Assembly (NCBI RefSeq): GCF_964204645.1 | Contig: NC_134033.1 | Location: forward strand, 5,046,231 to 5,110,230 | Origin: Tubulanus polymorphus | Taxonomy: Eukaryota; Animalia; Nemertea | Direction: 5' to 3' | DNA length: 64,000 bases | In this document: piece by piece, positions 8,139 through 49,903 of the stretch | How positions within the stretch are numbered: the stretch's first letter is position 1 | Layout of the letters: every line of letters begins with the position of its first letter | Program-made: the position numbers and the translations under genes | The notes under the pieces: generated by a model | What the model saw: the letters and a program-made list of their open reading frames with translations, nothing else | Database searches by the model: none | Told to the model about the DNA's origin: nothing

Positions 8139-9245
8139 TCAAGCGCGGCCGGGTTTACATTTCTGCGTCGTCAACTCAACGACAGCAAGTCTGAATTTAC
8201 TGTTAGACAAACAATAGACTAGAAAGTTCATACACGAATCGACCACGGTCAGACCGATGGCGATTTTCCGCTGAACCATCCGCGACTCGTACACGTTTAG
8301 ATCAGCTATAGGAGTGTCCGGTATGGCGAAACCCGCGCGCTGCATCCGTCCGATAAACAGCAGCGATTCACAACCGACGAATACTGCGACGAGAGCGAAC
8401 GACATTCTCAATGCGCGCAACTCCAACGTGTTGGAAGTTTGATTCTTTATCGCCGCCGAACGACTTTTCCCGATACCTGAAAATTTGTTCACGATCAAAG
8501 CGACGATCAAAACGACGTTGACGGCGAACAGCGCGATCATCGGAGCGATGATGTTGATTAGGGTGCCCTGCCAGCCTTCCAGACGAGCTTTCCAGTGACC
8601 GAAAATGCGATGGAAAAAAGGGAAAAACCTGCCTTGCCCGAGAGTAGGGGAATAGTGAATACATCGCTGCGGCACGAGTGCGCGGTCCAAAATAAACGAC
8701 GGAATGAAACACAAAAAACTGAACACGGTCAACAAGAATATAACACAATTGACGACTTTCCGCGTCCAGAACACTCGTGATTTCAACGGGAAAAGCGTAA
8801 TTACGAGTCGTTCCAAACTGATCAGAATAACACACCAGTTTCTGATCAGCTGGAAGATGTAAAACGGTCCTAAAGCGACCTGCGTGAATTCCCAGCCGAA
8901 AAACCAGTCGTCTATACGCAAAACGGTGTCGCCTAGATGTACGTAGAGGTGAATCGCGCGTAGAGGATACATGACGAACACGCTCGACGAGTAACATATG
9001 TCGAAAATCGCGAGAACTTTCAGTAGATAGTAGATATCCTTGTTCATCTTTTTCAAGACTAGAATCGTCGTGACGTTCAAAACGACGCCCGATATCGTGG
9101 CCGGTCCATAGAAAAAGATGTACAGATAAACGCTGATTTTATACTCTAAACGGATGGGCAGTTCAGCTCGGGCCTTATCGCAAACTCCGAGATAGACTCG
9201 TTTTGTGGTAATAGTCGACAGAACGGTGGTGTTTGAGTCAGCCAT
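8139..9245 (-). CDS. Intronless rhodopsin-class GPCR, FMRFamide receptor/Srw-like, 368 aa
   Basis: ATG at 9245 (MADSNTT, with an N-glycosylation sequon). Seven hydrophobic segments. Motifs GVVLN, LAIFD, SLERL, FVGCES and DSCMNFLVY..NSKFR. Confidence 0.92.
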   Translation of the reverse strand: MADSNTTVLSTITTKRVYLGVCDKARAELPIRLEYKISVYLYIFFYGPATISGVVLNVTTILVLKKMNKDIYYLLKVLAIFDICYSSSVFVMYPLRAIHLYVHLGDTVLRIDDWFFGWEFTQVALGPFYIFQLIRNWCVILISLERLVITLFPLKSRVFWTRKVVNCVIFLLTVFSFLCFIPSFILDRALVPQRCIHYSPTLGQGRFFPFFHRIFGHWKARLEGWQGTLINIIAPMIALFAVNVVLIVALIVNKFSGIGKSRSAAIKNQTSNTLELRALRMSFALVAVFVGCESLLFIGRMQRAGFAIPDTPIADLNVYESRMVQRKIAIGLTVVDSCMNFLVYCLSNSKFRLAVVELTTQKCKPGRA

Positions 9246-9870
9246 CGGTTGTCTAGCAGCTTCTCGCGCCCATTGCAACTTTACCCTCTGAAATATCACC
9301 CGCCTAAACTTGTCGACGTCAGTCAGTATACCCGCCTATTTTCAGTAGCAGGTAGAAATTTGTAAGACGACTGACTGCACGATGGTATATGTTGTCTAAC
9401 CCGGAGGTGCAAGTTGATCGCAGGCCTATTCTAAATTATACAGCCACCGCTTCTGAACTATATGGAATATGAAGCTTGTTATTTTCAAAACTATATATAT
9501 GCATATATTCTTGTTCATGTTTAGCAAGTTTCAACTCGGATATTGGCTTATATAACGTTGAGATGTTGAGACTCGATAAGGCTGTATGTATGGTAAATGT
9601 CTCTTGCAGGGGTTGCATCGTCAATGAAAAACGACATTTTCTTCATACGGTTTTTGCATTCTTGCTAAATCCTCTTGTTGCGTGTCTTTTTTCGCAAAGC
9701 CGAACACTTCAAAAAATAACCTACGTTACCAAATCTTGAGGAATAGACAAGTAGAAATGTTTGCAGTTTCAAAGCGGTAAACTACGCCAAAATCAGTACA
9801 GTTTGGACCAGGATTTGTTTTTACCCAATAAGACTGCTACCGAGTTAAATAGTGTATAGGATGAAACTAT

Positions 9871-9954: not shown

Positions 9955-10069
9955 CAGAACCACTGAATTAACGGTTTACCAAGCAAGATAAACAATACTG
10001 ATTTAGGAGGAGTCTACAGTAATTGGGGTATGAAAGTGATTCAGACGCTTCCTCGAAATTTGAAATTTA

Positions 10070-11503
10070 CACCGATCGATAGAACGAACGCCATCAATAG
10101 GGAGAAACTGGAACTAAACCAACAAGTGTCGGGGCTTCCGTAAACCGCACCGGAGTAGTGAGTGGTATCGGTGTTGTGTAGGACGATACACGGTCCGACA
10201 ATGAGGAATGGAGAAAACCAAACTGATAGTAGATAGTACAGTAACGTCTTAGGAGAATCGATCAGTGTACGAATAGCAGAAAATGTAGTGAACATGTGAA
10301 CAGAAACAGCGGCCATAGAAGCGAAAACAACCATCCAAATATAGTGTTTAACAGCGGCCATCGACACGCATGGTAATCGATCATCAACGCCGACCAGGCT
10401 GGAAATATGAAGAGTTTGAGCCACGGCGAGAGTTATACAGAGATTGACGATGAGTTTACCGGGAAGAGTTCGCTGATCGGGTATATTCAAGTAGATTACG
10501 ACCGTTATCACGAGACTGACGACCGACAGACAGCTAAAGGTGAAGGTTATCAGAAAATCGCGATCGGAAAATAACGAACTGACCGTTATTTTGAATTTTG
10601 AATCGTTTTGTCGTCTGCAAACCATGGCTCCTTCACTAGAATACACTCGCATGCAGTCGGTGATTTTAGTGGAACATTTACTCGATTTTACTATTTATGT
10701 TTTTCCGTCGTCGCTGGTAATTTGAAAAATTCTGTAATATTTGAAAGACGGGTTGGACTGGGCTAGAAATGAGTTACTTCCGGTTTGGGTCATATTATTT
10801 TCTACGTCTGCCTCTGTATCGATGACGTCACAGCGAGTATTCTTAGTCAAACTCGTAGTCGACAACTCGTAACCGGAAATGGTCACAAGACTGCCATCTT
10901 CACCGAATTGACACGTGATCATCGCCTCATATTTGCTCAAGATTGATTCCATAGTGACGTCACCGAGAAACTCTTTGTGATTGGTAAGCGTGAAGTCGCG
11001 TCTGTACAATGACGATTCATAGCTTAAAGATGATAAACTTCCTATTTCTGTAATCTTTGATTTATCGACAACGCCGCAGACTTTCACTTTGAAATACATC
11101 AATTCATACCCAAAGTTTTTCATAACAAATCGCTGAGTTTCGTTAAACGTAATAAAGAAAGAGAAATACACGCGTACGGATATTCTAGGCCATTCGTTCT
11201 CAACAAGCCGACAGATGGCGTTGTCTTCGTCGGTACCCTGTAGTCGATCCCCGTAAACAGCCGTATCCGCGTCATCTACGCGTCTCCTGGTCGAATATTT
11301 CGTTTGTTTCCGAGCAGAGAAATTCTTTCGGCGCCCACGAGATGACGGGCATTCCCGCAGTTCGAAATTCTACGCCGCTCGCGAGACTGAAATCGAGTAA
11401 GATGTTCAAACCGAATGTTTTTTGGCCGGTTTGATCATAGTTACAAACTAAGGTCCATTCGTTTAAAGCGCTGTCACTCAGTTCACATTTGATACAGTAA
11501 TAG
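10070..11503 (-). pseudogene. Secretin-class receptor copy 2; pseudogene truncated at both ends
   Basis: Highly similar to copy 1 over about 667-2102. It has a 2-nt deletion near 11246 and an AAA>TAA nonsense codon at about 10695. Homology ends abruptly in TM5 (~10070) and in the ectodomain (~11503). Confidence 0.92.
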
Positions 11504-15455: not shown

Positions 15456-16550
15456 ATGAACTCGACTTCAAATAACGCGAATGAAACTTATCCCCAAGAA
15501 CGACACCTCTATGGCGCGTCCTGCTACTTCTATTTTGTCTATCCAGTGGATTTGGTGAACACTATGAACCGGTCGATAAAGTGGGTACACATTGTTTGCA
15601 CCTCGTTCTTTATTGTCTTCGGTCTGATGATGAATATCGTATCATTAATCGTTATGATGATGCCGAAAATGCGCAAGAGCTCGTTCGCGGTCTACTTGGC
15701 AGCTCTAGCCATAAGCGACGGCGGTAATTTGATGCTGCACAGTATTTTCTGGATTAATTACATCAGCGCCCTTTCGGGTAGACCGTTGGTCATCGTGGTC
15801 TTTGGAGGGTTCGCAAAGAGCTTTATGAAATACATAAGTATGTATTTTGCCGCTTTGAGCAGTTGGTTAGTAACATTGATAAGTATTGAACGTTTTATCG
15901 TTGTCTGTTTTCCGATGTCAGCGTCGCGTTTGTATCGCCGTGGATCGGCCCGTGGCGCCACCTGTTGCACGGTTCTAAGCGTCCTTTGCGTAGTGTTAAT
16001 CGACGGTTCCCTGCGTCCATGGATGAACTACCACACCAGTTGTAGGATACCCAATCGACGCCGCGACTCACGCGCTTTAGGGACTCTAATGATGGGCTAC
16101 CTGCCTTTTATCATTATAACGTTTTGTTGCGTGAGTATAGTCGCAGTTTTGAGACTCCGCAGTGCTAGAATGCCGATCGCCGCCGTCAAATTAACCAATA
16201 ACAGAGTTACTCGACTTATGCTTCTCGTAATGCTCGTTTTTCTCGTTCTGTTATTTCCTACTGTAGTTACTCTTACTCTAGTAACCGTGCTCCCACACTT
16301 GCGAGAAGTTCTGCAATTGGTATCGAGTTCAATGTCCGTCATTCTTTCAGAAATAAGCTATTCGGTCAATTTCCTCATTTACGCATTGGCCAGTCGAAAG
16401 ATGAGGGAAGCGTTTGCTGAAAAGTTTCTTATTTGGTCGACAGATGGCACTCGTAGCAACATCCGATTAAGGGATCGAATGAATAACAAAATTAAGTCCA
16501 AAGAGACAACGGACTCTCCTACACCCGCTATTAATGCTAGTGAACCTTAA
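15456..16550 (+). CDS. Intronless rhodopsin-class GPCR, FMRFamide receptor/Srw-like, 364 aa
   Basis: N-glycosylation sequons at the N-terminus. Motifs GLMMN, LAALAISD, SIERFIVVCFP, YLPF and SYSVNFLIY. Confidence 0.93.
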   Translation: MNSTSNNANETYPQERHLYGASCYFYFVYPVDLVNTMNRSIKWVHIVCTSFFIVFGLMMNIVSLIVMMMPKMRKSSFAVYLAALAISDGGNLMLHSIFWINYISALSGRPLVIVVFGGFAKSFMKYISMYFAALSSWLVTLISIERFIVVCFPMSASRLYRRGSARGATCCTVLSVLCVVLIDGSLRPWMNYHTSCRIPNRRRDSRALGTLMMGYLPFIIITFCCVSIVAVLRLRSARMPIAAVKLTNNRVTRLMLLVMLVFLVLLFPTVVTLTLVTVLPHLREVLQLVSSSMSVILSEISYSVNFLIYALASRKMREAFAEKFLIWSTDGTRSNIRLRDRMNNKIKSKETTDSPTPAINASEP

Positions 16551-20450: not shown

Positions 20451-21515
20451 ATGAATTTCAGTTCGCAGACGACTTCACTACTCTCTACAACTACTAGAAA
20501 TCCCTGCTCACCTTACTTATTCCAAAACGTATTGTCAATCAGCGTAAAACTAGCTGGAGGTTTTCCTATCAGTATCGTCGGAATAATTTTGAATAATTTC
20601 AGCATTGTGATTTTACGTCGCCAAACTTCAAATCACATATCGCTCTACATTCTGCGATGTCTGGCAGTGGCTGACATAATCTTTCTTACATTTCACATAA
20701 TTCAAGAACCTTTTCGTTTCATTGTCTCCGGTTTGACCCAGGGTAGTCATATGTTCGTGATTCCTACGAGTATGAGTTGGGGTGTTCGGCCATGGATCTA
20801 TCGGGTAGCTTGGTTACCGAGAACCTCAGCGCAAGTGACAAGGAACTGGATAACTGTACTACTAGTTTTAGAAAGGTCCTTTTCTATCGCTAGGCCATTC
20901 TTCGCTAGAACTCATTTCACAATACCAAGGGTAAGAATTGTAGTTTGTTGTTTCTATATTATTTTTGGTATCTTAGGCTCTCCATTGATTATCGGTACTA
21001 CAGTAGGTATCTGGTTTTATGACGAATGTAATAAAGTCGTCATAAAATCCATCCGCGGAGCAAGCGATCCCATACGAAAATACTTCCTCACTGTATTTAT
21101 GTGGATTGATGACTTTCCTAGTCCTTTGTACAAAGAAATCCTGCCTGCCTTAATGCTAATAATTTTCAACAGCCATCTGATATGGACTCTGAGAAAGATA
21201 AGTTCTAGGAGAAAAGAAATGACACACGAAGGCGAACAAAGGCTAGACGTGAAAGCTATCAGGATAGCTGTAGCTATTGTTATTCTGTTTATCGTCTGTG
21301 AAATCCCTGCTTCGTTCCGATCTTATAACGAATTCATCGGTCGCTTCGTCAAAATGCCACCTATTAAATACTCTCACACCATCTATACCCTTCAAGAACT
21401 GTTTACCGATCTTTTACCGACCTTAAACTCGTCTGTAAATTTCTTTATCTATTACTTAGCAAACGATAATTTTAGAGGAACTGCAAAAAAACTGTTGAGA
21501 AGGCGGCCGATTTAA
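20451..21515 (+). CDS. Intronless rhodopsin-class GPCR, FMRFamide receptor/Srw-like, 354 aa
   Basis: Seven TM segments. Motifs GIILN, LAVAD, RNWITVLLVLERS, FIVCEIP and NSSVNFFIYYLANDNFR. Closest in motif pattern to the 8139-9245 receptor. Confidence 0.93.
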   Translation: MNFSSQTTSLLSTTTRNPCSPYLFQNVLSISVKLAGGFPISIVGIILNNFSIVILRRQTSNHISLYILRCLAVADIIFLTFHIIQEPFRFIVSGLTQGSHMFVIPTSMSWGVRPWIYRVAWLPRTSAQVTRNWITVLLVLERSFSIARPFFARTHFTIPRVRIVVCCFYIIFGILGSPLIIGTTVGIWFYDECNKVVIKSIRGASDPIRKYFLTVFMWIDDFPSPLYKEILPALMLIIFNSHLIWTLRKISSRRKEMTHEGEQRLDVKAIRIAVAIVILFIVCEIPASFRSYNEFIGRFVKMPPIKYSHTIYTLQELFTDLLPTLNSSVNFFIYYLANDNFRGTAKKLLRRRPI

Positions 21516-24390: not shown

Positions 24391-26040
24391 ATCACATTGT
24401 TCATTGGGTTTAGTCCAGGACTCGCGAGATTTTCAACAACACGGAAGTAACGTGTAATAAATGATGACTTGAATTGCATGACTACCTACCACCCCTCATT
24501 ATTGTTGGAAAACTAAACGTTCCGCACGACTAAAAATTAGTAATAATAATCAATAACATTTTAGGAATGGCCAGAATTTTAACTTAGGTTCTATCTCTTT
24601 TTTATTTTACAATTGCGATTGGTATAATTTTTTTTAAACGGCCGTTAAGGCTTCATGTTTCGTCTGCAATTCACTGCAAATAGTTACGCAACTACGCACA
24701 TTTCAGTGTTTTTGGCAGCTGTACACTCAATCGGCACCGTTCGTGACTAGCTTCACTGCGGAATTATCATTAATCAACATCGCCATATCACATCATCATT
24801 TTATATTGTGCCTTAAAACCCTAACAGCCGAAATAATTGAAATACACACACGATTTCTATCATTGAAAATTGAGAGAATGGCCGTGTTTGTGTTCTGCTG
24901 CTTCACGTAAATCCCGCGGGGTGGCGCCACCGCGCGGATAGGGGCCTATACGTCCAGAGCCCTAGCTTGATGGTATTCGAAAATTAAAGTATGGGCACTC
25001 GATATGATGGACTTCTATATCCACGCCTCGGTGTGGAGCGCGGAGCGGTTAGAGCGTTCGGCTAATCAGGGAAGCCAGGTCGTGGTTTCGAACCCCGTAC
25101 ATTACCGCAGTGTCTTCGGGCAAGACACTTATTCTCATTGCCACTGTCCACCCAGGAGAAAATGGGTATCTGGCCTGATAGATGACTCCGACTATTGCTC
25201 CCCAGGGAGAGATTACTGATATATGTGAGGGTATTAAAATCATGGTTGAAGTATTAATACCAAAAAATGTAAAGCGCTCCGAGCTAGATTTAGCGCTATA
25301 AAAGACACATATTATTATTATTCTCATCATCATACTGGATATTGCTGTTATTATGCCTCTCGAACAGCCTGTCATATCTGTAAAGATAATTACAGGTTAC
25401 GATATCTAACCGTATAAAAGGGCAAAGTCGTACTACTCGATCTCATTAACGAGTTGCCAATCGAGTTGTGTTATTTCTGCATTATCACATTTTTCATTGG
25501 GGTTTGGTCCAGAACTCACGAGATTTTCAACAACACGGAAGTAACGTGTAATAAATGATGACTTGAATTGCATGACTACCTACCACCCCTCATTATTGTT
25601 GGAAAACTAAACGTTCCGCACTGACTAAAAATTAGTAATAATAATTAATAAAATTTTAGAAATGGCCAGAATTTTAACTTAGGTTCTATCTCATTTTTAT
25701 TTTACAATTGCGATTGGTATAATTTTTTTTTAAACGGCCGTTATGGCTTCGTATATCGTCCGCAATTCACTGCAAATAGTTACGCAACTACGCACGTGTT
25801 TTTGGCAGCTGTACACTCAATCGGCACCGTTCGTGACTATTTGTGGAATTATCATTAATCAACATCGCCATATCACATCATCAACTTATATTGTGCCTTA
25901 AAACCCTAACAGCCGACATAATTGAAATGCACACACGATTTTTATCATTGAAAATTGAGAGAGTGGCCATGTTTGTGTTCTGCTGCTTCGCGTAAATCCC
26001 GCGCGGTGGCGCAACCGCGCGGAGTGGGGCCGATACGTCT
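24391..26040 (+). repeat. ~560-bp direct repeat pair (24391-24956 and 25484-26040) flanking an inverted copy of 6268-6789
   Basis: Both units start atcacatt..tcattggg..gtccag..cgagattttcaacaacacggaagtaacg and end ggggcc.atacgtc. Confidence 0.92.
25025..25325 (+). mobile_element. tRNA-derived CORE-like SINE, second copy
   Basis: Head gcctcggtgtggagcg, B-box ggtttcgaaccc, gggcaagacactt, and tail aaagcgctc...agcgctataaaa + (att)n. Confidence 0.8.
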
Positions 26041-26293
26041 AGCGGCAATATCGTTCTTGACTCCTTGAAAGGAATTGTCGCCCATAGGGCTGATCAGGTC
26101 AGGAAGGTCCGATGATTTTTTTCATCTAATAATTTCACTTTTCTCTTCCTACATTTGATTATCTATAACACGCGGATATATTTACTCTATTATCAATGCA
26201 TCTAAATCTATTAAACTTCCTCAACCAGAGCGATTGTTTTGGCTATGTATATACGACGGGTATAGGTGAATCAATCCTTTCTATATCACGACG

Positions 26294-29200
26294 ATGAAGA
26301 CGCGTCTGTTCTTTATTATCTGCACAGTTTTGTTGCAACTGGGAAATTTATACAACACACAAACATCTGGAGCTGAAAGTAAGTTACTGCAGCCGCCATT
26401 ACTCGATTTTGTGATTATATTTCAGTCAGATTTGCGAATTCGATGACGTTAGCTGTTTAATAATAGATTTACTACAGGCCCTAAATGTAACCTGACAAAA
26501 CAACAAATATAAACACATCTGGTTGACTTAATTTCACATGAAGTTTGTATCTTGATGTCTGGTTTGATAAAAAACGAGTCGCTTATATAATCACCTCACT
26601 AACCAGGGGCGGAGTCAGACGTCTGAGTAGAGGGGTCAAGTGCAGTTTTTTCCCAGGTATCTCATATATTTCAATGAAAAATACATTCACCGTGTGCAGT
26701 GATTTCCGGCAGACGCCGCGAAACAGAAATCGATAAAGATTTGAATCATGGTTAATTTCATCATTAATATGATTCATGTTTATATTCATTTGTTTCAGTA
26801 ATTTACGGGACGCCTCATTCTGCTCGAGATGCAAAACCCGACAATAAAACGCAAGGAGAAACGATTCGATATACTTGTAAAATAATTGGCAGAAATTCTA
26901 CAGTATCATTCCAAGAGAAGAGAAACGGTTCGGAACAATGGTTAACAGTTCCAGACGACCAGCTTAACAAAACTAAAGACAAACAGAATGTTGAGTTGGT
27001 TGAGCTAAAATTCCAAGCAGATTTCAAACGACACAATGGATCTTCATTTAGATGTCTTGTAAATGAAAGCCCAACAGATCCGGAACCTATTCAGTTTGAT
27101 CTGATCGTAGTTAAACGAACTGGTAAGTAACCGTTTGAGTTGCTTATTGAAATAATCAAATTATCTAGAACATTAACTTGCATTCTTGGTTTTCCTAGAA
27201 ATATCATAGAGTCAAATTGAGCTGATAAAATGTCTGATATCTGGTGTTTGTAGAGTTCGTTTTTAGCCCATTTTGGACTTTAGTCCCAGCGGGCTAGTGC
27301 GTTCACTTTTCGTCCGTAGACGGGATCCAGTTATTTTGACGAAGTTTCAAGACTGGCAGCCATTGTTGTTCGCCAAAATCAGCACTTTTTCCACATTTTT
27401 CAAGTTTTTAAGGGAAATTTTGAAGAGACTTTTATCAATTATCGTGGTCTTTCGTAAATGTTTTCATCCCCCAAAGGGCCCATCAGCACGAGAAAAATTT
27501 GGCCGATAGGACTCAAGATGGTCGTCCTCTGACCTAGGCGCTACAAATATCAATCGATGTAGATTTTAATTGTGGTTAGTTCCATCATTAAATGATTGAT
27601 CTCACTATCAGAAATAATCTGAACACGAAGCATGGGAGGGGTTCGATAGCCTCTAACACCCCACCCCCCCCCTCCTTGGATTTTCTTCTGATAAGTTATT
27701 CGAAGTTTGACCGAGTACTGTGCTGGGGAAGGCTATTTAATGTGTACTGTGCTATATATTTATATTCATTCGTTTCAGAAATCATTCCAATGCCAGATCT
27801 CAAAGGAAACCCCGACAGTAAAACACAAGGAGAAATTGTAAATTACACTTGTAAAATTGTCGGAAATTTTAATGCAACATTAACATTCCAAGAGAAGAGA
27901 AGAGCTTCAGAACAATGGGAAACAATTCCAGACGACAAGCTTCACAGAGCTAGCAAAAAGAATGTCCATTACGTTGTGCTAAAATTCCAAGCAGATTTCA
28001 AACTGCACAATGGAACGTCTTTTAGATGTCTAGTAAAGGAAAGCCCAACAGATCGGGAACCTATTCAGTTTGATCTAATCGTACTAGTTAATCGAACAGG
28101 TAAGTAACTGTTTGTATAGCGAATTGAATAAGTTAAACAATTTAGAACATTAAAACTTGCTTTCTTGGTTTTCCTACAAATATCAAAGAGTCAAATTGTG
28201 CCGATAAAATGTCCAATGTCTGGTGTTTGTTGTTTCATCCGTAGTTTCATTTTCTTTTAAAAATGTCCCTGGTCAAGTGCTGAACACATGCGGAGAATGG
28301 ACGACCAATTTTTGAAAGTATTCTTTTAAAGAATCTCATGTAAATATCATCTGTTTCGACATCGAATTTACTTTTTTTTCACGCATTATTTTCGTTGGAC
28401 CGCGGTTTGTTGCCTCCTCGTTGATGTATCTATTCCGTCCGTTCCTCCCGTACAAGAATAAATTTTGTGTCAACCATTTTACGGCTCTCAGTTTTAAGAG
28501 TCAGATTTCGTTGATTTCACTGTCTGGGCCCAGTTCCACACTTGTGAATTAAGAGTTGACTCAGAGTTAACTCATTGAAAATGAACTAAATTAACTCAAG
28601 TTAACGCTAACTCAGAACTGTGGAACTGGATGCTGAAGCACTGTTGTCTGACTGGCCACGCAGGAAGTATTCTTTATTAGGCGCCGCATTCATAAACGGA
28701 TCTCATTTCGTGTTTGTTGTTCATTTTATGCGAAAAGGCACATCGATTTACAAATCAGCTATTTTGCGTTCCGGGTACTATACTTAGTTAACGCGAAGAT
28801 CCAGCATAAGGTTTTCTAGAATTTTTGCACAGTCAAAAGAGTGAAAAAATTGCCTAACATCATTAACTTCATCAGGTGACGGGTGGAAACCAATGGCATT
28901 TACTGAAAAATAGTCTAGGAGGAGGTATGACATCATGTGACCAGTGATAGTTGATAACTATTAGGCGTTACTACGGTGTTAAATGCATATTTGTTCATTA
29001 CGGAAAACACTTTTTTCCAGGCTACTTTGAAAGCAAAACCACACGCAGTGAAAGTTACTTTCAAAATGTAGTTTTTTTCTCTCATTTCAGATGATTCAAG
29101 TTCCACTCAAATCCCGACGACTGAAACCACTACATTCGGGTCAGTATTCATTTCGAGCTAAAAATGTCCGACGGAAAAGGTTCCTAGACGATGTACGGGT

Positions 29201-31033
29201 TCCTGTTGTTTCGTAACAACGGCTGATACTAGACTACGTATCACACTCTGCTTTGCGGTCTATGTGTTTTGTAAAAATAACTTGATTCGATATCTCGCTT
29301 GTCTCTGGTTTCCGAATAAGAATCACGTGCTGGTTGGTGTATTTATAATGCTGATGTTTAGATGTGTCGGGGTCAATGAAACTGGAATTGTAATAAAAAC
29401 TGGAACATTCACTAATTATTCATGTCGTTTTCTACCATCAGCTGAAAATTTGGGAATAAAGGCAATCGCAAAATATGTGACATCGATGCCGCTACCACCA
29501 GCCCTGCTTTTGTTCAATTCTTCTCTGTTAATTAGTTTTTTGATTGTAAATTTCGTGCTTTTCATTCAGAGTTCGCCTGGTTACTACTGAAGAAAAGTTT
29601 CGCTCGAAAAACAAGGTCATTATGAATTTAACTTATAATATCAAACTTTCATGTGTAATATAGCCCCCGGATCCATCGCACAATTAATACCCACTTAACG
29701 TGGGGTAAAACAAAACAAACTTTGGAATAATTATATACATAAAATATAATTTTCATCACCTTAATATTTATTTATATATTCATTTTTTTTCTCAGACTGA
29801 CCCAACCGTCCAACCTACACTGGGCCAGACTGACCGCACCACACATGACTGGACCATGACGATAGTTTACATCATTAGTGGAGTTATCGGTTTCCTCCTC
29901 ATCATCGTTATTATCGTAGTCATCGTTTGCAGGTATTTTACTAAACTAACACGGTAGATTTCTGAAGAGATTATAACTATGTCTGATTGGACCGAAGTTC
30001 AATATCAAGGTCGATTGTAGAGCTCTATAACTAATGATAAGCGGTTGTCGTTAGTTCCAAGTCGAGTTTGTCGGTGACGTCATGTATAAATGATAACGTA
30101 ACCGCGCGCGTGTCTACTTACTTCGAATCGAACATACACGACAAATGTTGCTATTATATTGTGGGCTTTCCTGACAAAATGGCTGATAACCAAAAAAACT
30201 AGTCACATTGGCTTTATGTCACAACAAATATCCGATAACGAACGTGATAAAGCATTTTGATTTTTTAATTGATCGGAAAACAGGTTTTCGTAAGGTAGGC
30301 CTACTGGCAGTACATTAAACTGTTCAAATTCCAATAAAAAATGTCGAAGTTCCAATTTTCTCTAATTATTCTTCAAAGTAATGACGACTTTGATAAACTC
30401 ATAGGAATTGCAGAGACGGATCAATACACGAGCTTTTTATGCGCAGTTAACTCTTCTTTTTCAAGAGGTTTTTCTAGATGCGGGCTTTGCGGTAAATGAT
30501 CTGAACAGTATGATCTCTGATCAAAATCTTACATTATTTCAACATTTCTTTCTCGCTCGATTTCTTCAGCGCAAAACTACCCATTTTTCAGACGCAGACG
30601 ACTTTCCAGTGGAGATCGTGTGGACACTACACCCGAGTCTACAACACCGCAGCAACAAGTCGAGATGGTGTATGGAGTCAACGACGAGTTGAATGATGTC
30701 ATAGATTCGGGTAACGAAACTGACATACCACACACCAGCAATCAGAAAGTTACTACAGATCCGTGCGTGGATACTGAGGCCACAAACAACAAATATACGA
30801 CTCCTTATATGGATATGGGAGCAGGGGGAGACACGCATAGAGATCAGTTCTCGAATCCCGAACCTTTCGTGACGTATCATCAGTTAACGGAAGATACTGG
30901 TGAACCTGTGAAAGATGATATTCAACATTATTCTTACGCTTCTGTTGAATATACTCATGATCAATTTCCCTTAAGGGCTGCCACTGGACAAACAGTAACT
31001 GATTGTACATACACAAAACATACTAGGTTTTAA
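26294..31033 (+). CDS. Type I membrane receptor: signal peptide, 2 Ig domains, Thr-rich stalk, TM, ITIM/YxxM tail (467 aa, 7 coding exons)
   Basis: Exons: 26294-26378 (MKTRLFFIICTVLLQLG...), 26799-27122 (Ig1), 27779-28099 (Ig2), 29091-29139, 29570-29615, 29796-29932 (TM IVYIISGVIGFLLIIVIIVVIVC) and 30592-31033. All introns are GT-AG with compatible phases 1,1,1,2,0,2, totalling 1404 nt. The donors of the two small stalk exons (gtcagt, gtcatt) are weaker. Confidence 0.87.
27261..27550. mobile_element. Interspersed repeat (HINE-like) in intron 2 of the Ig gene
   Basis: Its start, ttttagcccattttggactttagtcccagcgggcta...ggatccagt, matches 62384-62470. It is absent from the paralogous position in intron 3. 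Confidence 0.6.
28524..28635. mobile_element. ~110-bp MITE, copy 1
   Basis: Inverted termini ccagttccaca...tgtggaactgg around the core aactcattgaaaatgaact. Related copies at ~36784 and ~51779. Confidence 0.75.
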
Positions 31034-32379
31034 TATATCGTTTCAATGGTTACAACATCTGCTAAATGAAATCGACTAAAACTACTTTATCGAAACAATA
31101 ATTGATTTCACATTTAGCATATGATAATAGACCAGGTGTCTAGTTTGGTTTGAGTCTCTGACTTGTGCAGCAGACGGATGGGGTGTCAGATCCGTCCACA
31201 TCACTGCACCACGCAACTGATGAACTGGGCTGTCCATAACATTCTCCCTTTAAAAAGGACATCACCAAGAAATATCGTTAATCTTTAGCAAATGTTTACT
31301 TTGGTCGAATTATATTCAAACTGTAAATTGAAATTCCAATGATTAATCTTCAAAAATTAATCTTAAAATCGTTACCTTAAATAGAGTGAGCATGAAGTCA
31401 AATAGTCATTTGTAGCTTAACTAGATTTTTTTTAGCAAGTATGAGCTTTGTCGAAAATTTGGTAATGTTTATAAGACAAGGAATGCTTTACGTAGATAAA
31501 AAAGATTTTCAACAAGGATAGACACAAAATAGATATAATTGTCGAACAGATATGTAAATTGATATAATATAGTATTATGTACAATCAGACTTTGTGCTGA
31601 AAAACCATCGTGAAAATTACAGCTGGCATCAACTGTGTGTAACGAATCACAAAAGAAGAGAAAGATAAAGATAGAAAAGTCACTTTTTATGTTAATAGTT
31701 CATTGGTTATCTCGCTTGCCGCAAACTCTTAACGTTTTTGGCATCGTTTGACAACTATGACGTCATGCCAATGCTAGTTAAATTGTTCGAAAGTCGTAGT
31801 AAAAATAACGCCGACGCTTCTCATTTTCGTAGTAACTACAAATTGAAACTCCGTTTACGTTAAATATTAGACACAGCTGAAAATGACTAAACATAATGTT
31901 TCGATTATCCCCATCAACAAAGCGTCGCCAGATTTATGATTTAATGGTCCACAAAAGTTATTTCATCACATATTTGCTCGTTAATTGCTACCAACATGCA
32001 TGTATAACTGGCTTAGATTCAGAAATCTAAAAATGAAACTTCTGGGTATAACGAGGTCATGCGCCACTTAAATGTAGATATAGTCGTTCTGGGAAACCCA
32101 GAAATAATTTTGAAAAAATAAACGGCAACCCGAATTCGATTTTATTCTATCACGCCGTAACTCGTAAGTTTAAACACGGTTCACAACTCGAAAGTAAAAC
32201 GGATCATAATAGCGACACGAATACGAATACGCTCCAAACATTTCCATGGTAAGAGGATGGAAAAAACGGTACTTAAAAATAATTACATAAACGTTAATTA
32301 AAGCATTTAAAACTTCATAAACTGAACTCACATTCTACCGCAGAGGTCTCGACATCTACCGCAGAGATTCAGAATTACG

Positions 32380-33527: not shown

Positions 33528-36500
33528 TCAATTTTTGGCGGCTCGACTAAAATTGAATTTCGCTCGACACATATCGAACACTCGTTTGTTGGCGATGAAA
33601 GCCAAGAAAACCAGAAAACCTTGAGACGAATTCAACAAATTGAAGAAATACCAGAGATAATCGTTATTTACGAACGACGCTACGAACCCGACCACCCACG
33701 TGACCCCGGTCACTAAAGCCATCCGGTAGAAAATGAATGTGGTCGTTCTCTTCTGTTTGGCGTTAGATGATGAAGTGGACATCGCGGTAAATGACCGGTG
33801 AATGCGGTAAACTGTAGCTACGAATAGAATTATACTGACCAGATCGATAATACCGATCGGTAGAACGAACGCCATCAATAGGGAGAAACTGGAACTAAAC
33901 CAACAAGTAACGGGGCTTCCGTAAACCGCACCGGAGTACTGAGTGGTATCTGTGTTGTGTAGGACGATACAGGGTCCGACAATGAGGAATGGAGAAAGCC
34001 AAACTGATAGTAGATAGTACAGTAACGTCTTAGGAGAATCGATCAGTTTACGAATAGTGGAAAATGTAAGGAACATGTGAATAGAAACAGCGGCCATAGA
34101 CGCGAAAACAACCATCCAAATATAGTGTTTAACAGCGGCCATCGACACGCATAGTAATCGATTATCAACGCCGATCAGGCTGGAAATATGAAGGGTTTGA
34201 GCCACGGCGAGAGTTGTACAGAGATTGACGATGAGTTTACCGGGAAGAGTTCGCAGATCGGGAATATTCAAGTAGATTACGACCGTTATCACGAGACTGA
34301 CGACGGACAGACAGCTACAGGTGAAGGTTATCAGAAAATCGCGATCGGAAAATAACGAACTGACCGTTATTTTGAAGTTTGAATTGTTTTGTCGTCTGCA
34401 AACCATGGCTCCTGTATCAGAATACACTCGCACGCAGTCGATGATTTTAGTGGAACATTTAGTCGATTTTACTATTCTCGTTTTTCTGTCGTCGCTGGTG
34501 ATTCGAGAAATTCTGTAATATTTGAAAGACGGGTTGGACTGGGCTAGAAACGAGTTACTTCCGGTTTGGGTCATATTATTGTCTACGTCTGCCTCTGTAT
34601 CGATGACGTCACAGCGAGTATTCTTAGTCAAACTCGTAGTCGACAACTCGTAACCGGAAATGGTCACCAGACTGCCATCATTACCGAATTGACACGTGAT
34701 CATCGCCTCATATTTGCTCAAGATTGATTCCATAGTGACGTCACCGAGAAACTCTTCGTGATTGGTAAGCGTGAAGTCGCGTCTGTACAATGACGATTCA
34801 TTGCTTAAAGATGATAAACTTCCTATTTCTGTAATCTTTGATTTATGGACATCGCCGCAGACTTTCACTTTGAAATACATCAATTCATACCCGAAGTTTT
34901 TCATAACAAATCGCTGAGTTTCGTTAAACGTAATAAAGAAAGAGAAATACACGCGTACGGATATTCTAGGCCATTCGTTCTCAACAAGCCGACAGACGGC
35001 GTTGTCTTCGACGGTATCAAGTCGACGGTATCCACGTAAACAGCCGTATCCGCAACATCTACGCGTTTCCTGGTCAAATATTTCATTCGTTTCCGAGCAG
35101 AGAAAGTCTTTCGGCGCCCACGTGATGACGGGCATTCCCGCAGTTCGAAATTCTACGCCGTTCGCGAGACTGAAATCGAGTAAGATGTTCAAACCGAATG
35201 TTTTTTGGCCGGTTAGATCATAGGTACAAACTAAGGTCGATTCGTTTAAAACGCTGTCACTCAGTTCACATTTCATGCAGTAATAATTACGGTATGTTTT
35301 CACCCGTCCACCGACTACAGCTGATATCGGGTTAAAAACCCGTCTGCATTTAGACCTTAAGTCTTGATCTGCTGACTCGTTGCAGTGTGACGTCACGGGT
35401 AGGTTACTGCGCATGCACGGCTGTAAAACCATGCGAACTTGCCTGTGATGCGCGTAAGATAAACGACAATCTTCGGGCAGTCGAACCTTTGCGGTATCGT
35501 CGCTTAAAGACGCGTTGTGCACGCTCGTGATGACGTCATCGATTCGTGTGGTGTTAGTGCACTGCAGGACGAGACTAGCCGGTTTGTATCGAGTGTCGTT
35601 GAACCCGTGACACATCGCGCAATACATATTCTTAAAGGGAAGCCAGTCGTCGATGTAGACGGGAATCGTCGTAGCTAGATTACTGGACGGCGATTCGCAA
35701 TAGAGACGCACGTCTGAATTCAAGTCGAAATCACTCGGGCACCGACTGATCGCTATAAAACCCTTTGACTGATACGTCTCGATTCCGATTCCGTATATAC
35801 AGTCGGTCCATTGAATTTGTTGTATCGTTTTGTTTCGTCTCAATTCGTCCGTGTCGCTTGATATGACGCACTTTCCAATCAGGTCACAACAGTTGTTGAA
35901 CAGTCCGCAAGTACATAAATTAGCCAAACAACCCGTGACTGGACAAACTCGAACCAAATCCCCATCTTCATCTATTTGCTCTGATGCCACCTTGTAATCT
36001 CCGATCAATTGGTTGTTATTTATGTCGCCTCTTCCGGGTATTTTTCGACCAGGCATCCCACGTGTGATACCCGTTATCCCAGATTCGGGATTCGACATTC
36101 CAGATACGTTGAGACGCGATGAAACGATCTGAAATAATCGGGCTATAGTTACCTTTCATATAACATATAAACATATAACGAACTCCAGTTTTCTCCCTGC
36201 CAACAACCCTCGTCAATAAATGATCCTAAACTGTACTTCAAACGCAATTTATGCACAGATAAAGTCCAATATGACGCCATTCAGCGCCATCAAATTTTGG
36301 GTAAATTTGCAAAATCGAAATAAAAATTCGATGAAATTACAATTTCTTGTAACCGCGTGCTCCCAAATGACGACATGTTGAATGGCATGAACCGCGCGTA
36401 ATAATCAGGCTATCAGGCTATTTTCCCTTCTTCCCTACCATAAACCCTCCATTGTGCGTTAAAGAATATTCCAGTTATCAAAAAGGCTTAATTAAACGAA

Positions 36501-44039: not shown

Positions 44040-47000
44040 GCATTTAGTTGGTACATACGCTATCAGTGGAATAGTGTTTCTTCAAAAAGATCCCGCCGAA
44101 CAAGACCTAACACGCCACATTCAGATAGATACATGCGCTTCACTTAGCTTCAACTCAGTTATTATATTGACTGAAGAGTGAATTGTCGAAACAGATATTG
44201 ATCGGGATGCCAGACGGGTTTGCAATGAATTTAACGTTTATACAGATAGATTTCAGATTATATCCTGGAAAGGATCCAATGAAAACTCGTCCTCAAATTT
44301 ACGACGGATGGAACAGCACCAGTGAACCTATAGCTCTTATACGAGAACAAACCGGGCATCCACCTTCATCGTTTTATACTAAAACCAATAAAGCACGTTT
44401 TGCGTTCATTTCAAATAGATGGTCGTTTACGTCGCAGTTACTCGTGCAAGTTTACAAAATATGAGATTGGAACATCTCTAACCCGTTAATTCAAGTCTAT
44501 AATAAATCAGGACTGCTCACTACAATTGATGGAATACCACATATAGTAACTCAGTCTAAACACTTATACTGCTGGTCTACCACAGTCGATGTTCTGCAGT
44601 ACGTCGTCTTTAACTGGACACGTGATCTCGTCTCGTCACCAGGTGTCGTTGGGTTATATAAACAGGAAGGGTTACGTATTGTGAGAACTGATATTTTACT
44701 CAGTTTTAACCATCTTAAATCTCTGTGTGTAAAATCAGACGGATTTCTCGTGATTCTGTGCGTTCTAACGACATCGGATTTTTTAAGATCGAATTTGAAA
44801 ATAGAATTTGAAGTGAAATCAATGACAATATCAGACGTCTACGTCAACAAGCCATGGATATCGGTAAGTTTTGTATAACGGTTTTTTTCAAATTAATTTT
44901 GATTAATAGTATTAATTTAGATTTTGATTATCATCTTGACGCATTTGAAATCTGCCATAAACACGTTACGTTAATTTTTGACAAATCCATGAAATAAACG
45001 GATAATGAATACCATAGTAACAATGAACTCTCATTTGTCATTATGTCAACTACCCACTGGTTAACACTAGCGAAACCTCGAACGTTTGGTCCAATAAATA
45101 CATGTTTACACAAACTAATTTATAATTACTTGGAGAATTGCAACTCCTCAAAATATCATCGATATTCTTTCGTTATATTCGAAATTATCCCTTTGTTAAC
45201 ATGCAATGTTTTAATCAATCATCTTATATTTTAGAGATCAAACGCATTGACACGTTTAACAGCTTATCGACTGTTCCCGAGTTCAAAGAATACACTGTAT
45301 CGTGTTACTACATTACACGTAAACTGGAAAGTGAACATCTATGAAGAACAGTTGAAGCTAACAGTGCTATCAGAAAACTGTGATCGAGCTGGTTTTTATA
45401 TATATTTGATGGTAGTAATTTCACAGCTAGAAGCTATGGTCCGTGTTGTCCTGGTTCATACTACGGTCGATCTGTCGTCAGCCTGATTACATCAGGTGGA
45501 CCGGTTACTGTAGTAGCATACGCTTATTACTATAACAATCAGTTAACAGTTGGTAGCTCATCTCTAGAATTTGCTCCTACTGATTGTGATGGTTATGTTC
45601 TACAGGAAGAAGAACGTGAAATCAATATGACGTCACACTGTCTCGTGATTACACCTGAAAATCGACGCCATCGCTTGAAAAATATCCACATATTATCAGA
45701 ACACGAATATCAAATTGACCGATGTTTTCTCAAGATGTCTTGGTCATGTGATCAGTTTCTGAGTTTGAGTAATCAGTTTCGTAATAACAGTCTCGTATTA
45801 AACACCGTAGATTTCACAGTTAATGAGATTGGATTCTGGCAGAGACCACTAATAGTTACACTACGTCCTAAATGTTTAGGAGTGAAAAGGCGATATTTTG
45901 GATTTGCCAGCCCCCCTCTTGTCAGCTGGACTAAAGATAATTGTGGACTTGTGCAGTCACCGAACTACCCGGGCTGGTCAGGAGGTGCACCAGAAACTAT
46001 TTCCTATCAATTTAAAAACCCGATACATCAAAATATATTTCAATATTACCGATTTATTGTCAAATTTATCGGATCAGTTTCATGCCAAACAAGCGTTAGG
46101 AACGCGGATGATCCAATTTTGTTCATACAAGTGATAGGTTACAACATTTTCTTTAATGGAAAATATTTCAAAAATATTGAAGCCAAACATGAAATTAGAA
46201 TATGTGAAAATAACGCTGCGCGGGGACTTATATTTTATAGCTTGACAGATAATTCCCTGCTTTTTGAAGTGAAGAATAAAATTCCCACCTTTCAAATACA
46301 ATATACTTTACGCGAGTCGTTACCGATTAAACATTTCGATGATTTCTACTGTAAACAAGGATTTCAAGATTCAGGAATTTCCTGCATCAAATTCATCAGA
46401 GATGAACGTCTGAATTGGGAGAACGCTGAAATATACTGTAGACAGAAGTACGCGGGACATCTACTCAGTATTAACTCAGAACAGGAAATGATTTCCATCA
46501 AAAGATTATTCGCAACAGAACTTCTCCGAATGGCGTACACATTAAAAGCGCTCATAATGATGATTGGATTAAAATGGCAGGTAATACACAAATGTACACA
46601 AATATGAATTAGAGAAAAGATATTTGAAAGTAATAATCATTTTCTTTTTTTCGCGAAACAGAATGGTTATTACATGGACTGACGGTAAACCATTGAGCTA
46701 CACAGAGTGGTATAAACCTGTTATTAATGAAACGATACCAGAAGTTATTCGAGGATTGATATCTCCGCTGAGAAAACAACCGATAAAGGACGTCAATATG
46801 CCGTGTACGGCGATGATACTGAATAATCCACGAGGATCAGCGAACTGGGTTCGATTCCCGTGTCAAATCGAGGAGACGAACACGACATTCATTTGTGAAT
46901 CTGAGAGAATCGACATCAAAAACAAACACAATTCAACGATAAACGATGCGAACAATTCAATAAATACAGACTTAAATAAAACCATTGAACAAACGATTCC

Positions 47001-49903
47001 CGATGTTGATTTAATTAACTCAACCTGTCCAAGAGGTTGGGTAACCATTTCTGGATAATGTTATCAAATACTAACCGACTGGAAAAACAATCGAGGTTTG
47101 AATATTCGGAGTGCTAGAGAAATGTGTCACAGTATCCGCGCAGAAATAGTAAGAATCACCTCAAATAGAGAAATAGATATGAACAATTTGATCAGCGAAT
47201 TTCGATATCGACATCAAGATGGCGATATACTGACAATGGACCGTGACGGATTCAAAGTTATCGAACCACTGGTGACCAGAAATGAAATTACTTATATTCA
47301 ATCAGTTAAATGGTTATTTAAACCTTTCGATAATACAAAAGATAATGTGCATTCCGTGTTGTGTACCTATAATGTAACTGATGAAGAGTTAGCTTCTGGA
47401 AGCGGTTGTAAATCGCGGCAGTTTGAATGTAACGATCAAAGATGTATCAGCGACCATCGCGTATGTGATACCAGACACGACTGTCAACACGGTGAAGATG
47501 AACTCAATTGTACGGATATCAATTTACACAGTCAGTTCCGCTGTAACGATGGACAGATTATATCGATTAGCGGTTTCTGTGACTTTATGAGAGATTGCGT
47601 GGATGGCTCGGATGAGAACTCGTGCTATCATCCGCAGTGTTTATATACGCAATATCGCTGTTCCAATCACCAAGGCGTCGATAGTTATAAACGATGTGAC
47701 GGACTAGCCAACTGTAAAGACGGTTCCGATGAGATCGGATGCACTGCCGAACTTTGTCAGGGGTTCTCGTGCGCGGACGGTGAATGTATTAGTTCTCAGT
47801 TGTATCGGGATGGTGCCGTGGATTGTAGCGGAAGTCTCGAAGAAGACGAATTGGTCACTAATATGACAGTGAATCCCGAGATATACTGTAATAATGACAA
47901 TCACTGTACGACTCGTTTCACAGATCTGTGTAAGGAATCGGATGAACAAAGATGTTCGTTCAATTCTCCTCGCTGTTATTCCCGACACGAAAGGTGTATT
48001 TTAGAAAGGATGCCGATTGGTTTCCCGGTATGTAGAAATCTTGAACATATACTCGCGTGTAATGACTTCGAATGCGAGGCTGGTACTGTAAAATGTCTGG
48101 CATCTTACTGTATACCGATCAGACCCGTTTGTGACGGTCGATCCGATTGTCCAAATTCAGAAGATGAACGAAACTGCGAGACTTGGTCGTGTCCGGGAAT
48201 GTTTAAATGTGGCCAGGAAAATCGATGTATTCCGCAATCTGAAGTTTGCGACGGTGTCGTAAATTGTGAACATAACTCGGATGACGAGTCATACTGTAAG
48301 GTCACGTGTCCTGAACGTTGTAATTGCCGGGGTCTTTTCATCGATTGTGAAAATGCTGTTTTATCAGATATTACTGGTCGTTTTATAAAATCAACTCGAG
48401 TTTTGATTTTGTCGAATAACCGAGTCGTATTTAACGAGTCGACGTTCAACTCTTTCATTTATCTTCGTTTTCTCGATATTTCGGGCAATAATTTGTCTTA
48501 CATCGTTCCCAATGCGTTTTCTAATCTAAACAATCTTCACACATTGGACCTTACTCACAACCGCATAGCATCATTATCTGCTAATACATTCGCAGGTTTG
48601 ATCGGTTTAAAAGAACTATTTCTTGTCGGAAATCCGCTGCAACATTTTAAAGACGGTAGTTTTCGAGGTCTGACATCACTTCCTGCCCTTGATCTTCACG
48701 GACTTTCTATATCGGTTCTCGGTGAAAATGTATTTAAAGGTTTATCCACATTACAGTCGTTAAATATCAGCAGTAACAAAATTTTTCTGGATTGGTTGGA
48801 CTTGAAATTCTTGACCTCGTCAACAATTTTTGAGTAATATCCGTAGAAAGAAACGTTCTAGGCGATCTTATATCATTGAAATACTTAGCATCGGATGCTT
48901 ACAAATTCTGCTGCATGGCGCCGAATGTTGACCGATGTCTTCCCGAAGCTGATCAATTTTCAACCTGCTCTGACCTGATGGGTAACACTGTACTGAGAGC
49001 CATCATCTGGATGATCGCATCTTTCAGTTTTCTTGCTAACAGTATCGTTATCTTATTTCGTATTCAAGCTTTGCGGATGAAATCCTCCGGAACACGTAAC
49101 ATATCTTCAGATATCCTCATCATTAATATTGCCGGTTGTGATTTTCTGATGTCGGTCTATTTGTTTTTGATCGCAGGAGCTGACCACGCGTTCAATGGTA
49201 TTTATTATCTGAATTCTGAAACTTGGACGAATAGCTCATTATGCCGTCTCAACCGGGATTATTGTCACCGTTTCGTGCGAAGGTTCCTTAACTTTCCTCT
49301 TAATTCTAACGCGTCAGAGATATTCAAATATCGTCAACCCGTTTTCGGGAAGTCCAATTATAACTCCAATACGTTATCGGTATTTGCTGCATTTGTTGGC
49401 TCGTTATTAGCACAGTTTCTATTCTACCGCTGTCATCGTCGTCTTACTTCGGAGACAATTTTTAAGGTACAACCGGAGTTTGTTTGCCTATGAATTTACT
49501 AACGATTGACGTCAATGGCTGGGACTATTCATTCGCTATTTTTGCCTTGTTTAATGCGGCAATATTGGCTACGATAATGACGACGTACGCTCAGATGTAT
49601 AGACTCGTATCTGGAAGTAGGTCGGGCTCGGGTAGAGCCGATCCTACCGAACTGGTTTTAGCTCGAAGGAGTTTAGTAATCAATCTTTGTAATTTATTTT
49701 GCTGGCTACCGATAATAATCGTTCAGTTTTGCGCCGTATTTTCGGTCGAGATACCGAACCAGGTGGCCGCTTGGCTGGCCGTTCTATTTTTACCGATCAA
49801 CTCGTCTTTGAATCCGCTTCTTTATACAATACTAACTATCGATATGAAATCTATTCGTGAACGCAATAAACGACGACTAGGATTGACGACACCGAGTAAA
49901 TAA
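44040..49903 (+). pseudogene. GRL101-like LGR pseudogene: CUB-like repeats, 2 C-type lectin domains, ~7 LDLa repeats, LRRs, 7TM
   Basis: CUB motifs (FAMNLTF..IYDG; CGLVQSPNYP), CTL motifs (NWENAEIYC..GHLLSINS; CPRGW), LDLa repeats (CDG..DC.DGSDE), LRRNT CPERCNC, hinge DAYKFCC..DQFSTCSDL, and a 7TM ending PINSSLNPLLY. In-frame stops at 44462 (TGA), 47056 (TAA), ~48831 and ~49462. Frameshifts near 45400, 46672, 48782, 49251 and 49381. Confidence 0.9.

Follow-up and report, generated by a model that had tools for sequence, protein, structure and literature searches.

Which signal, if any, would a small and nameless immunoglobulin (Ig)-type surface protein of a nemertean pass into the cell? The question is raised by a gene at 26294-31033 (+) of the window examined here, by which we mean the whole 64,000-nucleotide stretch of DNA from the palaeonemertean Tubulanus polymorphus that was analysed (assembly GCF_964204645.1, contig NC_134033.1, positions 5,046,231 to 5,110,230). 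Its seven exons are intact, are bounded by canonical splice sites, and encode a 467-residue type I membrane protein. A first-pass annotation, made from the letters of the window, had read this product as an undescribed inhibitory immune or self-recognition receptor, on account of a match to the immunoreceptor tyrosine-based inhibitory motif (ITIM) and a phosphoinositide 3-kinase (PI3K)-type YxxM motif in its cytoplasmic tail. We lean, with confidence only slightly better than even, towards a different description, namely a lineage-restricted recognition receptor of the Ig superfamily (IgSF) that would signal through phosphotyrosine and that carries a predicted PI3K-type dock. The PI3K-type YxDM motif is the best-supported candidate for the core output of the family to which the gene belongs, and by analogy with CD28, DAP10, CD19 and ErbB3 a net signal that is activating or co-stimulatory seems more likely than an inhibitory one.

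Receptors that combine an Ig fold, a single membrane pass and tyrosine motifs in the tail are well known, and lineage-specific expansions of such receptors are common in invertebrates; as such, the gene itself is unsurprising. The 467-residue model proposed for it is complete, the seven exons summing to 1404 nt (467 codons and a stop), and its translation is 100% identical to database protein P0174 (467 residues), which stands in RefSeq as LOC141911117 under the name "uncharacterized protein". No paper on it was found, nor any that connects receptors of this kind with nemerteans, T. polymorphus included, and the gene, being already in RefSeq without a name, is hence annotated yet unstudied. 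The value of the locus lies in its family context: a divergent Ig domain that Pfam misses in the window gene, a tail of tandem PI3K-type docks apparently shuffled onto several ectodomains, and a hint of fast change in the first Ig domain. To our knowledge, immunity and cell recognition in nemerteans have hardly been studied, and the family would offer a concrete entry point to them as well as a natural test of whether YxxM copy number tunes PI3K recruitment. What is new in this work is the RNA-level evidence of splicing, a 46-nt exon, a motif-by-motif comparison of the tails, and the contrast in rate between the first Ig domain and the same domain in a second gene array.

Tyrosine motifs of the cytoplasmic tail

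Exon 6 (30592-31033, +), as read directly, encodes an RRRR stop-transfer sequence and then a cytoplasmic tail of 147 residues, among them 25 acidic residues, 31 Ser or Thr and 8 Tyr, with the stop codon at 31031-31033. Homologous tails are present in 14 further proteins of T. polymorphus, and a word-based search with the tail of a relative returned 15 proteins including the query, 15 of 15 from T. polymorphus. The relatives are found in RefSeq as LOC141910843, LOC141907468, LOC141907918 and others (P0010-P0014 and P0167-P0176), again as "uncharacterized protein". The tyrosine motifs noted in the first-pass annotation all proved correctly placed on rereading of the sequence; along the plus strand they are VYGV (30668-30679), YMDM (30806-30817), VTYHQL (30869-30886, residues 414-419), the block YSYASVEY (30929-30952) and CTYTK (31004-31018, read directly). 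When the window tail is shuffled, the ITIM pattern [ILVS]xYxx[ILV] arises in a fraction of 0.147 of the shuffles and YxxM in 0.154. Both motifs are therefore at chance level in this one tail, and they carry weight only once the tails of the family are compared.

Under that comparison the YxxM motif, which had been recognised as PI3K-type, turns out to be a hallmark of the whole family. All 14 of the 14 family tails contain it, in 1 to 12 copies per tail, arranged in tandem units of 14 residues, each with Y-[MI]-D-M at its centre; the window gene has one such unit, its YMDM, which is invariant in six close paralogues and would serve as a dock of the type bound by the PI3K p85 SH2 domains. The sequence pY-x-x-M, and YMDM in particular, is reportedly (from the 1993 work of Songyang et al.) the preferred ligand of these domains, and YMDM is the sequence of the docking sites of PDGFR-beta and KIT. 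The genome of T. polymorphus likely encodes a class IA PI3K regulatory subunit, as judged from matches to the p85 inter-SH2 profile (PF16454) on two adjacent exons at C2:27959921-27960302 (L053 and L054), which score 49.6 and 39.1 bits, above the Pfam cutoff.

Two further elements of the tail are shared within the family. A membrane-proximal acidic tyrosine motif, [VI]-Y-[DE]-[DEV]-[LP], occurs in 14 of the 14 family proteins examined (as IYEEL, VYDEL or IYEDP) and bears a likeness to Src-family SH2 and substrate motifs; VYGV is a degenerate copy of it, interrupted as VYGVNDEL, and three of the six close copies have His in place of its Tyr. Towards the C-terminus the relatives share a block of the form Y-M-N-P ... 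Y-x-Q-L-T-E-D-T-D-E-P ... Y-S-Y-A-[TS]-V-[EQ]-Y. The last part of this block is kept as YSYA[TS]V[EQ]Y in P0010, P0011, P0014, P0167, P0169 and the window gene, while its first part, the Grb2-type (YxN) YMNP upstream of the ITIM site, reads FSNP in the window gene.

The tyrosine of VTYHQL is the Y-x-Q-L tyrosine of this same C-terminal block. Were the protein an inhibitory immunoreceptor, the phosphorylated VTYHQL would recruit an SHP-type phosphatase and damp an activating pathway; in a variant of the idea, the two-Ig subfamily located on C9 would form the inhibitory branch of an activating, multi-YxxM family. VTYHQL does fit the ITIM pattern, it does not vary among the six close copies, and its Tyr and +3 Leu are kept in more distant relatives. 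Furthermore, the subfamily has lost YxxM copies, YMNP and the intact acidic tyrosine motif and has gained V at the -2 position, which is the direction expected of an inhibitory branch. However, invariance among the close copies is uninformative because their tails are 94-99% identical, and V at -2 is found only in these near-identical C9 copies, the informative relatives having T or R in its place (TKYLQL, TTYLQL, RTYLQL). The aligned site, which precedes a TEDT-EP block, also reads RYMNL in relatives, and it is absent in P0010, P0168, P0171, P0173 and P0176. The match is a single one, of the kind that 14.7% of shuffled tails provide, with no second ITIM and no immunoreceptor tyrosine-based switch motif (ITSM) in the window protein, and no partner bearing an immunoreceptor tyrosine-based activation motif (ITAM) was found among the 14 family tails. 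We regard the inhibitory reading as unlikely on these grounds, and the corresponding claim of the first-pass annotation is not supported by the comparison. Its expectation that the tyrosine motifs would be kept in homologues holds for the YxDM, the YSYA block and the Tyr and +3 Leu of the ITIM site, and fails for the -2 residue of the latter. A search for paralogues with ITAMs or with a charged transmembrane (TM) helix had likewise been proposed; in addition to the lack of ITAMs, a Glu is present in the cytoplasmic end of the TM helix of P0169 and P0171 (…IIMAEIIMRR…), both of which keep long YxDM tails.

It is reasonable to postulate the following course of events for the receptor reading that we prefer. 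The membrane-distal Ig domain would bind a ligand, and clustering of the receptor would then lead to phosphorylation of the tail by a cytoplasmic tyrosine kinase. The resulting phosphotyrosines would recruit SH2 proteins, the family-conserved YxDM site drawing in the class IA PI3K regulatory subunit and the conserved Y-x-Q-L and YSYA-S/T-V tyrosines possibly engaging further SH2 partners. We infer the binding of ligand by this domain, the phosphorylation of the tail, the recruitment of SH2 proteins and the sign of the signal.

Ig-fold domains and the ectodomain

The extracellular part is built around two Ig-like domains, the membrane-distal domain 1 (D1) encoded by exon 2 (26799-27122, +) and domain 2 (D2) by exon 3 (27779-28099, +). 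D2 is 64% identical to D1 (E 3e-47), and both exons are of phase 1-1, which is usual for Ig-domain exons. Neither D1, D2 nor the tail exon has a Pfam match, and for D1 and D2 this is so even at E<=10. The TM exon gives sub-threshold Pfam matches only, and full-length P0174 a single sub-threshold match to TMEM154 over the stalk and TM helix, which we take to be compositional. A sequence-profile search of the PDB with the domain returned no Ig chain and only weak, spurious matches (toxin repeats, HA33). The same domain in the relative P0003 does pass the Pfam model C2-set_2, scoring 22.9 bits where 21 are required.

In a family alignment of 32 domain sequences (A1), a Cys26-Cys85 pair, 59 residues apart, is invariant in 32 of 32 domains, and the sequence H-N-G-x-x-F-R-C before the second Cys is nearly so. 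The canonical strand-C Trp, some 12 residues after the first Cys, is missing, its place being taken by Phe or Tyr (VSFQ, VIYQ); an invariant Trp, W47, instead sits 21 residues after the first Cys and beyond strand C, a shift of about 10 residues. A model of D1 computed with AlphaFold2 (AF2) from this alignment (pLDDT 82, pTM 0.72) has seven to eight strands, assigned as A', B, C, (C'), D, E, F and G. When this model was compared with the PDB by Foldseek, 50 of the 50 listed matches were Ig domains, with TM-scores up to 0.66, and included MyBP-C C1, CD96, IgNAR V, BTLA and NPTN. Structural alignment by VIA-align gave Z 9.4-10.6 and a root-mean-square deviation of 2.1-3.4 over 79-95 aligned residues, with the Ig domain of BTLA as the top neighbour (Z 10.6) and the adhesion Ig domains of Rst, SYG-2, DLAR, NPTN and CD147 among the best. 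We conclude that the two domains of the window gene are divergent yet genuine IgSF domains of the I/C2 type. The layout originally proposed, that is, a signal peptide, two Ig-like domains, a stalk, a TM helix, RRRR and a tyrosine-rich tail, is thus borne out, the Ig fold by structure prediction and the remainder by direct reading.

The domain appears restricted to one lineage. A family profile searched against 1.84 billion representatives gave 15 matches below 1e-30, of which 14 cover the full domain; 10 of the 10 full-domain matches checked by name are from T. polymorphus, and P0004, P0006, P0012 and P0014 match own-genome copies by sequence. The fifteenth match represents multi-Ig proteins (e.g. 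hemicentin-1-like), and further proteins of this type follow below it, the unnamed ones being I-set/Ig_3 arrays by Pfam with partial and summed matches of E 1e-33 to 1e-10. No full-length relative outside T. polymorphus was present among the significant full-length matches of the profile and tail searches.

The ectodomain as a whole contains 11 N-glycosylation sequons and a Thr-rich stalk. These features may be taken to favour a cell-adhesion or scavenger-type surface protein, in which the tail tyrosines would be YxxPhi, AP-2-type signals for sorting and endocytosis and not phosphotyrosine docks. YMDM, YHQL and YASV all fit the pattern Y-x-x-hydrophobic; the extracellular part, a small and (from its predicted sequons) heavily glycosylated two-Ig unit on a mucin-like stalk, would suit such a role, and so would the adhesion Ig domains among its best structural neighbours. 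Such a protein seems improbable to us all the same, as the relatives carry up to 12 tandem, near-identical 14-residue YxDM units, an organisation unlike that of sorting signals, and the tyrosines lie in a strongly acidic context typical of tyrosine-kinase substrates.

Gene structure, splicing and transcription

The remaining exons complete the reading frame as follows, all on the plus strand. Exon 1 (26294-26378) holds the start codon and the signal peptide, residues 1-28 and the first base of codon 29, as recognised from a hydrophobic N-terminus and from identity to P0174. Exon 4 (29091-29139) encodes a Ser/Thr-rich stalk and is identical in paralogues, and exon 4b (29570-29615), 46 nt in length, extends the stalk and restores the frame that yields 467 residues. 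Exon 5 (29796-29932) supplies the end of the stalk and the TM helix (29850-29930, residues 294-320), which contains no charged residue before RRRR and coincides with the top hydropathy window of the protein (peak 3.46 at residues 301-319).

Public sequencing runs were aligned to window positions 26200-31300 at 90% likeness. Contigs of run X4 are spliced, with GT..AG boundaries, at five of the six junctions: 27122/27779, 28099/29091, 29139/29570, 29615/29796 and 29932/30592, so that introns 27123-27778, 28100-29090, 29140-29569, 29616-29795 and 29933-30591 are skipped exactly. D2 is thereby flanked by observed joints on both sides, exon 4b is joined to each of its neighbours, and the TM and tail exons are spliced to the Ig exons, as the first-pass annotation required of RNA data. 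The joint between exons 1 and 2 is absent from those listed for X4; the same junction is used in the RefSeq model of the paralogue P0001. In runs X1 and X2 the introns of the gene are covered and the X4 joints are absent, which argues that X4 contains cDNA; run X5, guessed to be RNA, held no sequence of the window gene. The X4 contigs show paralogue-typical bases, for instance at 26891 and 27971, and transcription is therefore demonstrated for the near-identical subfamily and not unambiguously for the window copy. In either case, the window gene or a copy at least 98% identical to it is transcribed.

Two side observations concern the introns. A RefSeq isoform of P0001 (C9:4.50 Mb) reads through the donor of exon 4b and stops after about 20 residues, and its product is presumably a secreted protein with two Ig domains and no TM helix; an equivalent read-through of the window gene (29616-29663) would meet a stop after 15 codons. 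Introns 2 and 3 contain high-copy repeats (27226-27567 and 28423-28764), over which summed contig depth rises to as much as 315,000 compared with some 150-500 in the vicinity, and loose ends and back-joints are numerous there; these are probably elements like short interspersed nuclear elements (SINEs) or miniature inverted-repeat transposable elements (MITEs).

An expanded family and the rate of change in D1

A search of the T. polymorphus genome with D1 found at least 65 matching Ig exons, clustered on C9, C6 and C19. C9 holds five two-Ig copies, one-Ig variants also occur, and one copy lies on C19; the clusters on C6 are large and are at 18.2-18.4, 20.4-20.6 and 21.7-22.8 Mb. The window gene belongs to this two-Ig set, which comprises five or six recent duplicates. 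The full seven-exon structure is common to the C9 copies, and reading frames and splice sites are intact in the five two-Ig copies and in one one-Ig copy. One copy, L021 (C9:4901500-4909500), lies 170 kb upstream of the window gene and has both Ig exons 100% identical to it. When window positions 26000-31333 are compared with L021, the 5' flank through intron 2 is identical (about 2.1 kb without a substitution) and intron 3 has 4 differences, whereas further 3' the two copies differ by 3.7% within intron 5 and by 1.1% within the tail exon. Such patchwork identity among the C9 copies points to recent duplication with gene conversion or unequal exchange.

The other family members share the Ig-like domain at 41-96% identity and mostly have only one such domain, and some have other ectodomains or other tails. 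The YxDM-repeat tail is also joined to ectodomains that lack the family Ig domain, in P0167 (on C6) and in P0172 and P0175, which have a different Ig-like set; the N-terminal, non-Ig domain of P0167, of about 140 residues, is PLAT-like by eye and has no Pfam match at E <= 0.001. The pattern suggests that the tail module spread over ectodomains by exon shuffling. Since the same tail occurs on several ectodomains, it behaves as a transferable, selected signalling module.

The family Ig domain is also found in a further context. RefSeq models P0007 and P0002 (C6:18349780-18371299, loci L055-L057) join an N-terminal Ig_2 domain, the family Ig domain and a TM helix to cytoplasmic NACHT and NLRC4_HD2 domains. 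This would be either a transmembrane Ig-NACHT (NLR-like) protein or a chimeric gene model; the latter is possible because the TM and juxtamembrane exons extend no further than 18355607 and the NACHT domain, in one 2.7-kb exon at 18368621, is reached via a 12-kb intron and one 42-residue exon.

Comparison of the five two-Ig copies reveals 16 nonsynonymous variable sites in D1 and not one synonymous site (binomial p of 0/16 = 0.02). The remaining coding sequence of the same copies has 34 nonsynonymous and 17 synonymous sites (Fisher p 0.007 against D1), with omega about 0.6. For the copies of this domain in the C6 tandem array the count is 8 of each kind (p 0.002 against D1). The contrast suggests that amino-acid change in D1 is accelerated, short of proof of positive selection. 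An immune or self-recognition role, as put forward in the first-pass annotation, remains a plausible suggestion that rests on the expansion of the family together with its fast-changing D1. An attempt to draw polymorphism from the public reads was rejected, since at 90% likeness paralogue reads map to the gene and the apparent variants at 26891, 27090 and 27971 are paralogue differences.

Several points weigh against the phosphotyrosine-receptor reading. Phosphorylation, kinase association and SH2 binding are predictions from motifs. The window copy keeps one YxxM, by itself a 15% chance event and one that also fits the YxxPhi endocytic sorting pattern, and motifs conserved elsewhere in the family are lost or degraded in it (the interrupted acidic tyrosine motif, and FSNP for YMNP). 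As to D1, the density of nonsynonymous variable sites (0.064 per site) is close to the density of variable sites in introns (0.058), and relaxed constraint could be the source of much of the pattern; gene conversion among the copies, as indicated by their mosaic identity, further complicates any reading of dN/dS.

The last points would be expected of a recently duplicated, redundant copy that drifts under relaxed constraint and whose motif content has no current function. The omega outside D1, the equality of D1 and intron densities, the loss in the subfamily of motifs conserved elsewhere, including the VYGV tyrosine that is His in three copies, and the presence 170 kb away of a copy 100% identical over the 5' 3.8 kb are all in keeping with drift of this kind. 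Drift does not, however, predict zero synonymous sites out of 16 in D1, nor does it sit well with frames and splice sites that are intact in six copies or with the existence of spliced subfamily transcripts, and we hold this account to be very improbable.

A bolder scheme than the receptor reading favoured here would be a nemertean paired-receptor system. Activation would fall to the members with many YxDM units, and the two-Ig receptors of C9, the window gene among them, would form a derived branch made inhibitory by the loss of YxxM, YxN and acidic tyrosine sites and the gain of a canonical ITIM. Their ligand-binding D1 would be under diversifying selection, and the Ig domain of relatives would be wired to a transmembrane NACHT effector. 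We give this scheme little credence; if true, it would represent an independently evolved system for recognition of self and non-self or of pathogens in Spiralia.

Comparison with known receptor systems

The nearest comparison is with the other family members of T. polymorphus, which share with the window gene the Ig-like domain, the exon phases, the TM helix followed by RRRR, and a homologous tail with its acidic tyrosine motif, YxDM units and YSYA-T/S-V block; they differ in that most of them carry a single Ig domain and 2-12 YxxM motifs, against two Ig domains and one YxDM unit in the window gene. Beyond the species, the motif content of the tails recalls vertebrate PI3K-docking receptors and adaptors (CD28 with YMNM, ICOS, DAP10 with YINM, CD19, ErbB3, PDGFR-beta and KIT with YMDM, and the IRS proteins), in which the same or nearly the same motif (YMDM, YIDM, YINM) stands in an acidic cytoplasmic context. 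Multiple YxxM motifs, as in the relatives, are a feature of ErbB3, IRS and CD19, and CD28, ICOS and CD19 have Ig-fold ectodomains too. SH2 specificity is established, and it is the ground on which these proteins may be compared as work-alikes. No sequence homology to them was detected, however, the window protein has no kinase domain, and the repeat of the family is a 14-residue, minisatellite-like unit.

The vertebrate ITIM receptors (SIRP-alpha, LILRB, Siglecs, PD-1 and BTLA) are likewise type I Ig-fold receptors, and the window gene has one match to their motif. That match is single, is not conserved and has no ITSM partner, and the structural likeness to BTLA, at Z of about 10, is common to many unrelated Ig domains. 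A connection to SIRP, LILR and Siglec receptors or to the Alr proteins of Hydractinia had been drawn in the first-pass annotation; no sequence link to any of them was found.

The Alr proteins are, in our view, the closest analogue in concept. They are type I proteins of a family that is lineage-specific, clustered and expanded (Huene et al. 2022, PMC9546547), whose Ig domains escape standard sequence models and were recognised by structure prediction, and some of whose tails contain an ITAM or ITIM (PMC9546547). The T. polymorphus family is also lineage-specific, clustered and expanded, and the Ig domains of the window gene likewise have no Pfam match and were recognised by structure prediction. 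Alr proteins combine a V-set D1 and I-set D2 and D3 with an Fn3-like spacer, and the core disulfide is missing from many of them (PMC9546547). The window gene, from a different phylum, has in contrast a pair of I/C2-like domains that resemble each other; these keep the disulfide pair, and nothing Fn3-like accompanies them. No Alr homologue is present among the full-domain profile matches (E<1e-30, all T. polymorphus), a result obtained without direct comparison with Alr sequences. We know of no allorecognition phenotype in nemerteans.

Genes surrounding the receptor locus

The window Ig gene lies in a duplication-prone region rich in genes for G protein-coupled receptors (GPCRs). Three related, long single-exon open reading frames (ORFs) are found on the minus strand at 325-2685 (786 residues), 10041-11171 (a fragmented copy) and 33528-36098 (856 residues); each combines a Cys-rich N-terminal region with a seven-TM end, and we assign them for this reason as predicted adhesion- or secretin-like GPCR paralogues. 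Intronless ORFs of the rhodopsin GPCR type are located at 8139-9299, 15456-16550 and 20451-21515, and an LDLa/LRR GPCR-like gene at 45627-49903.

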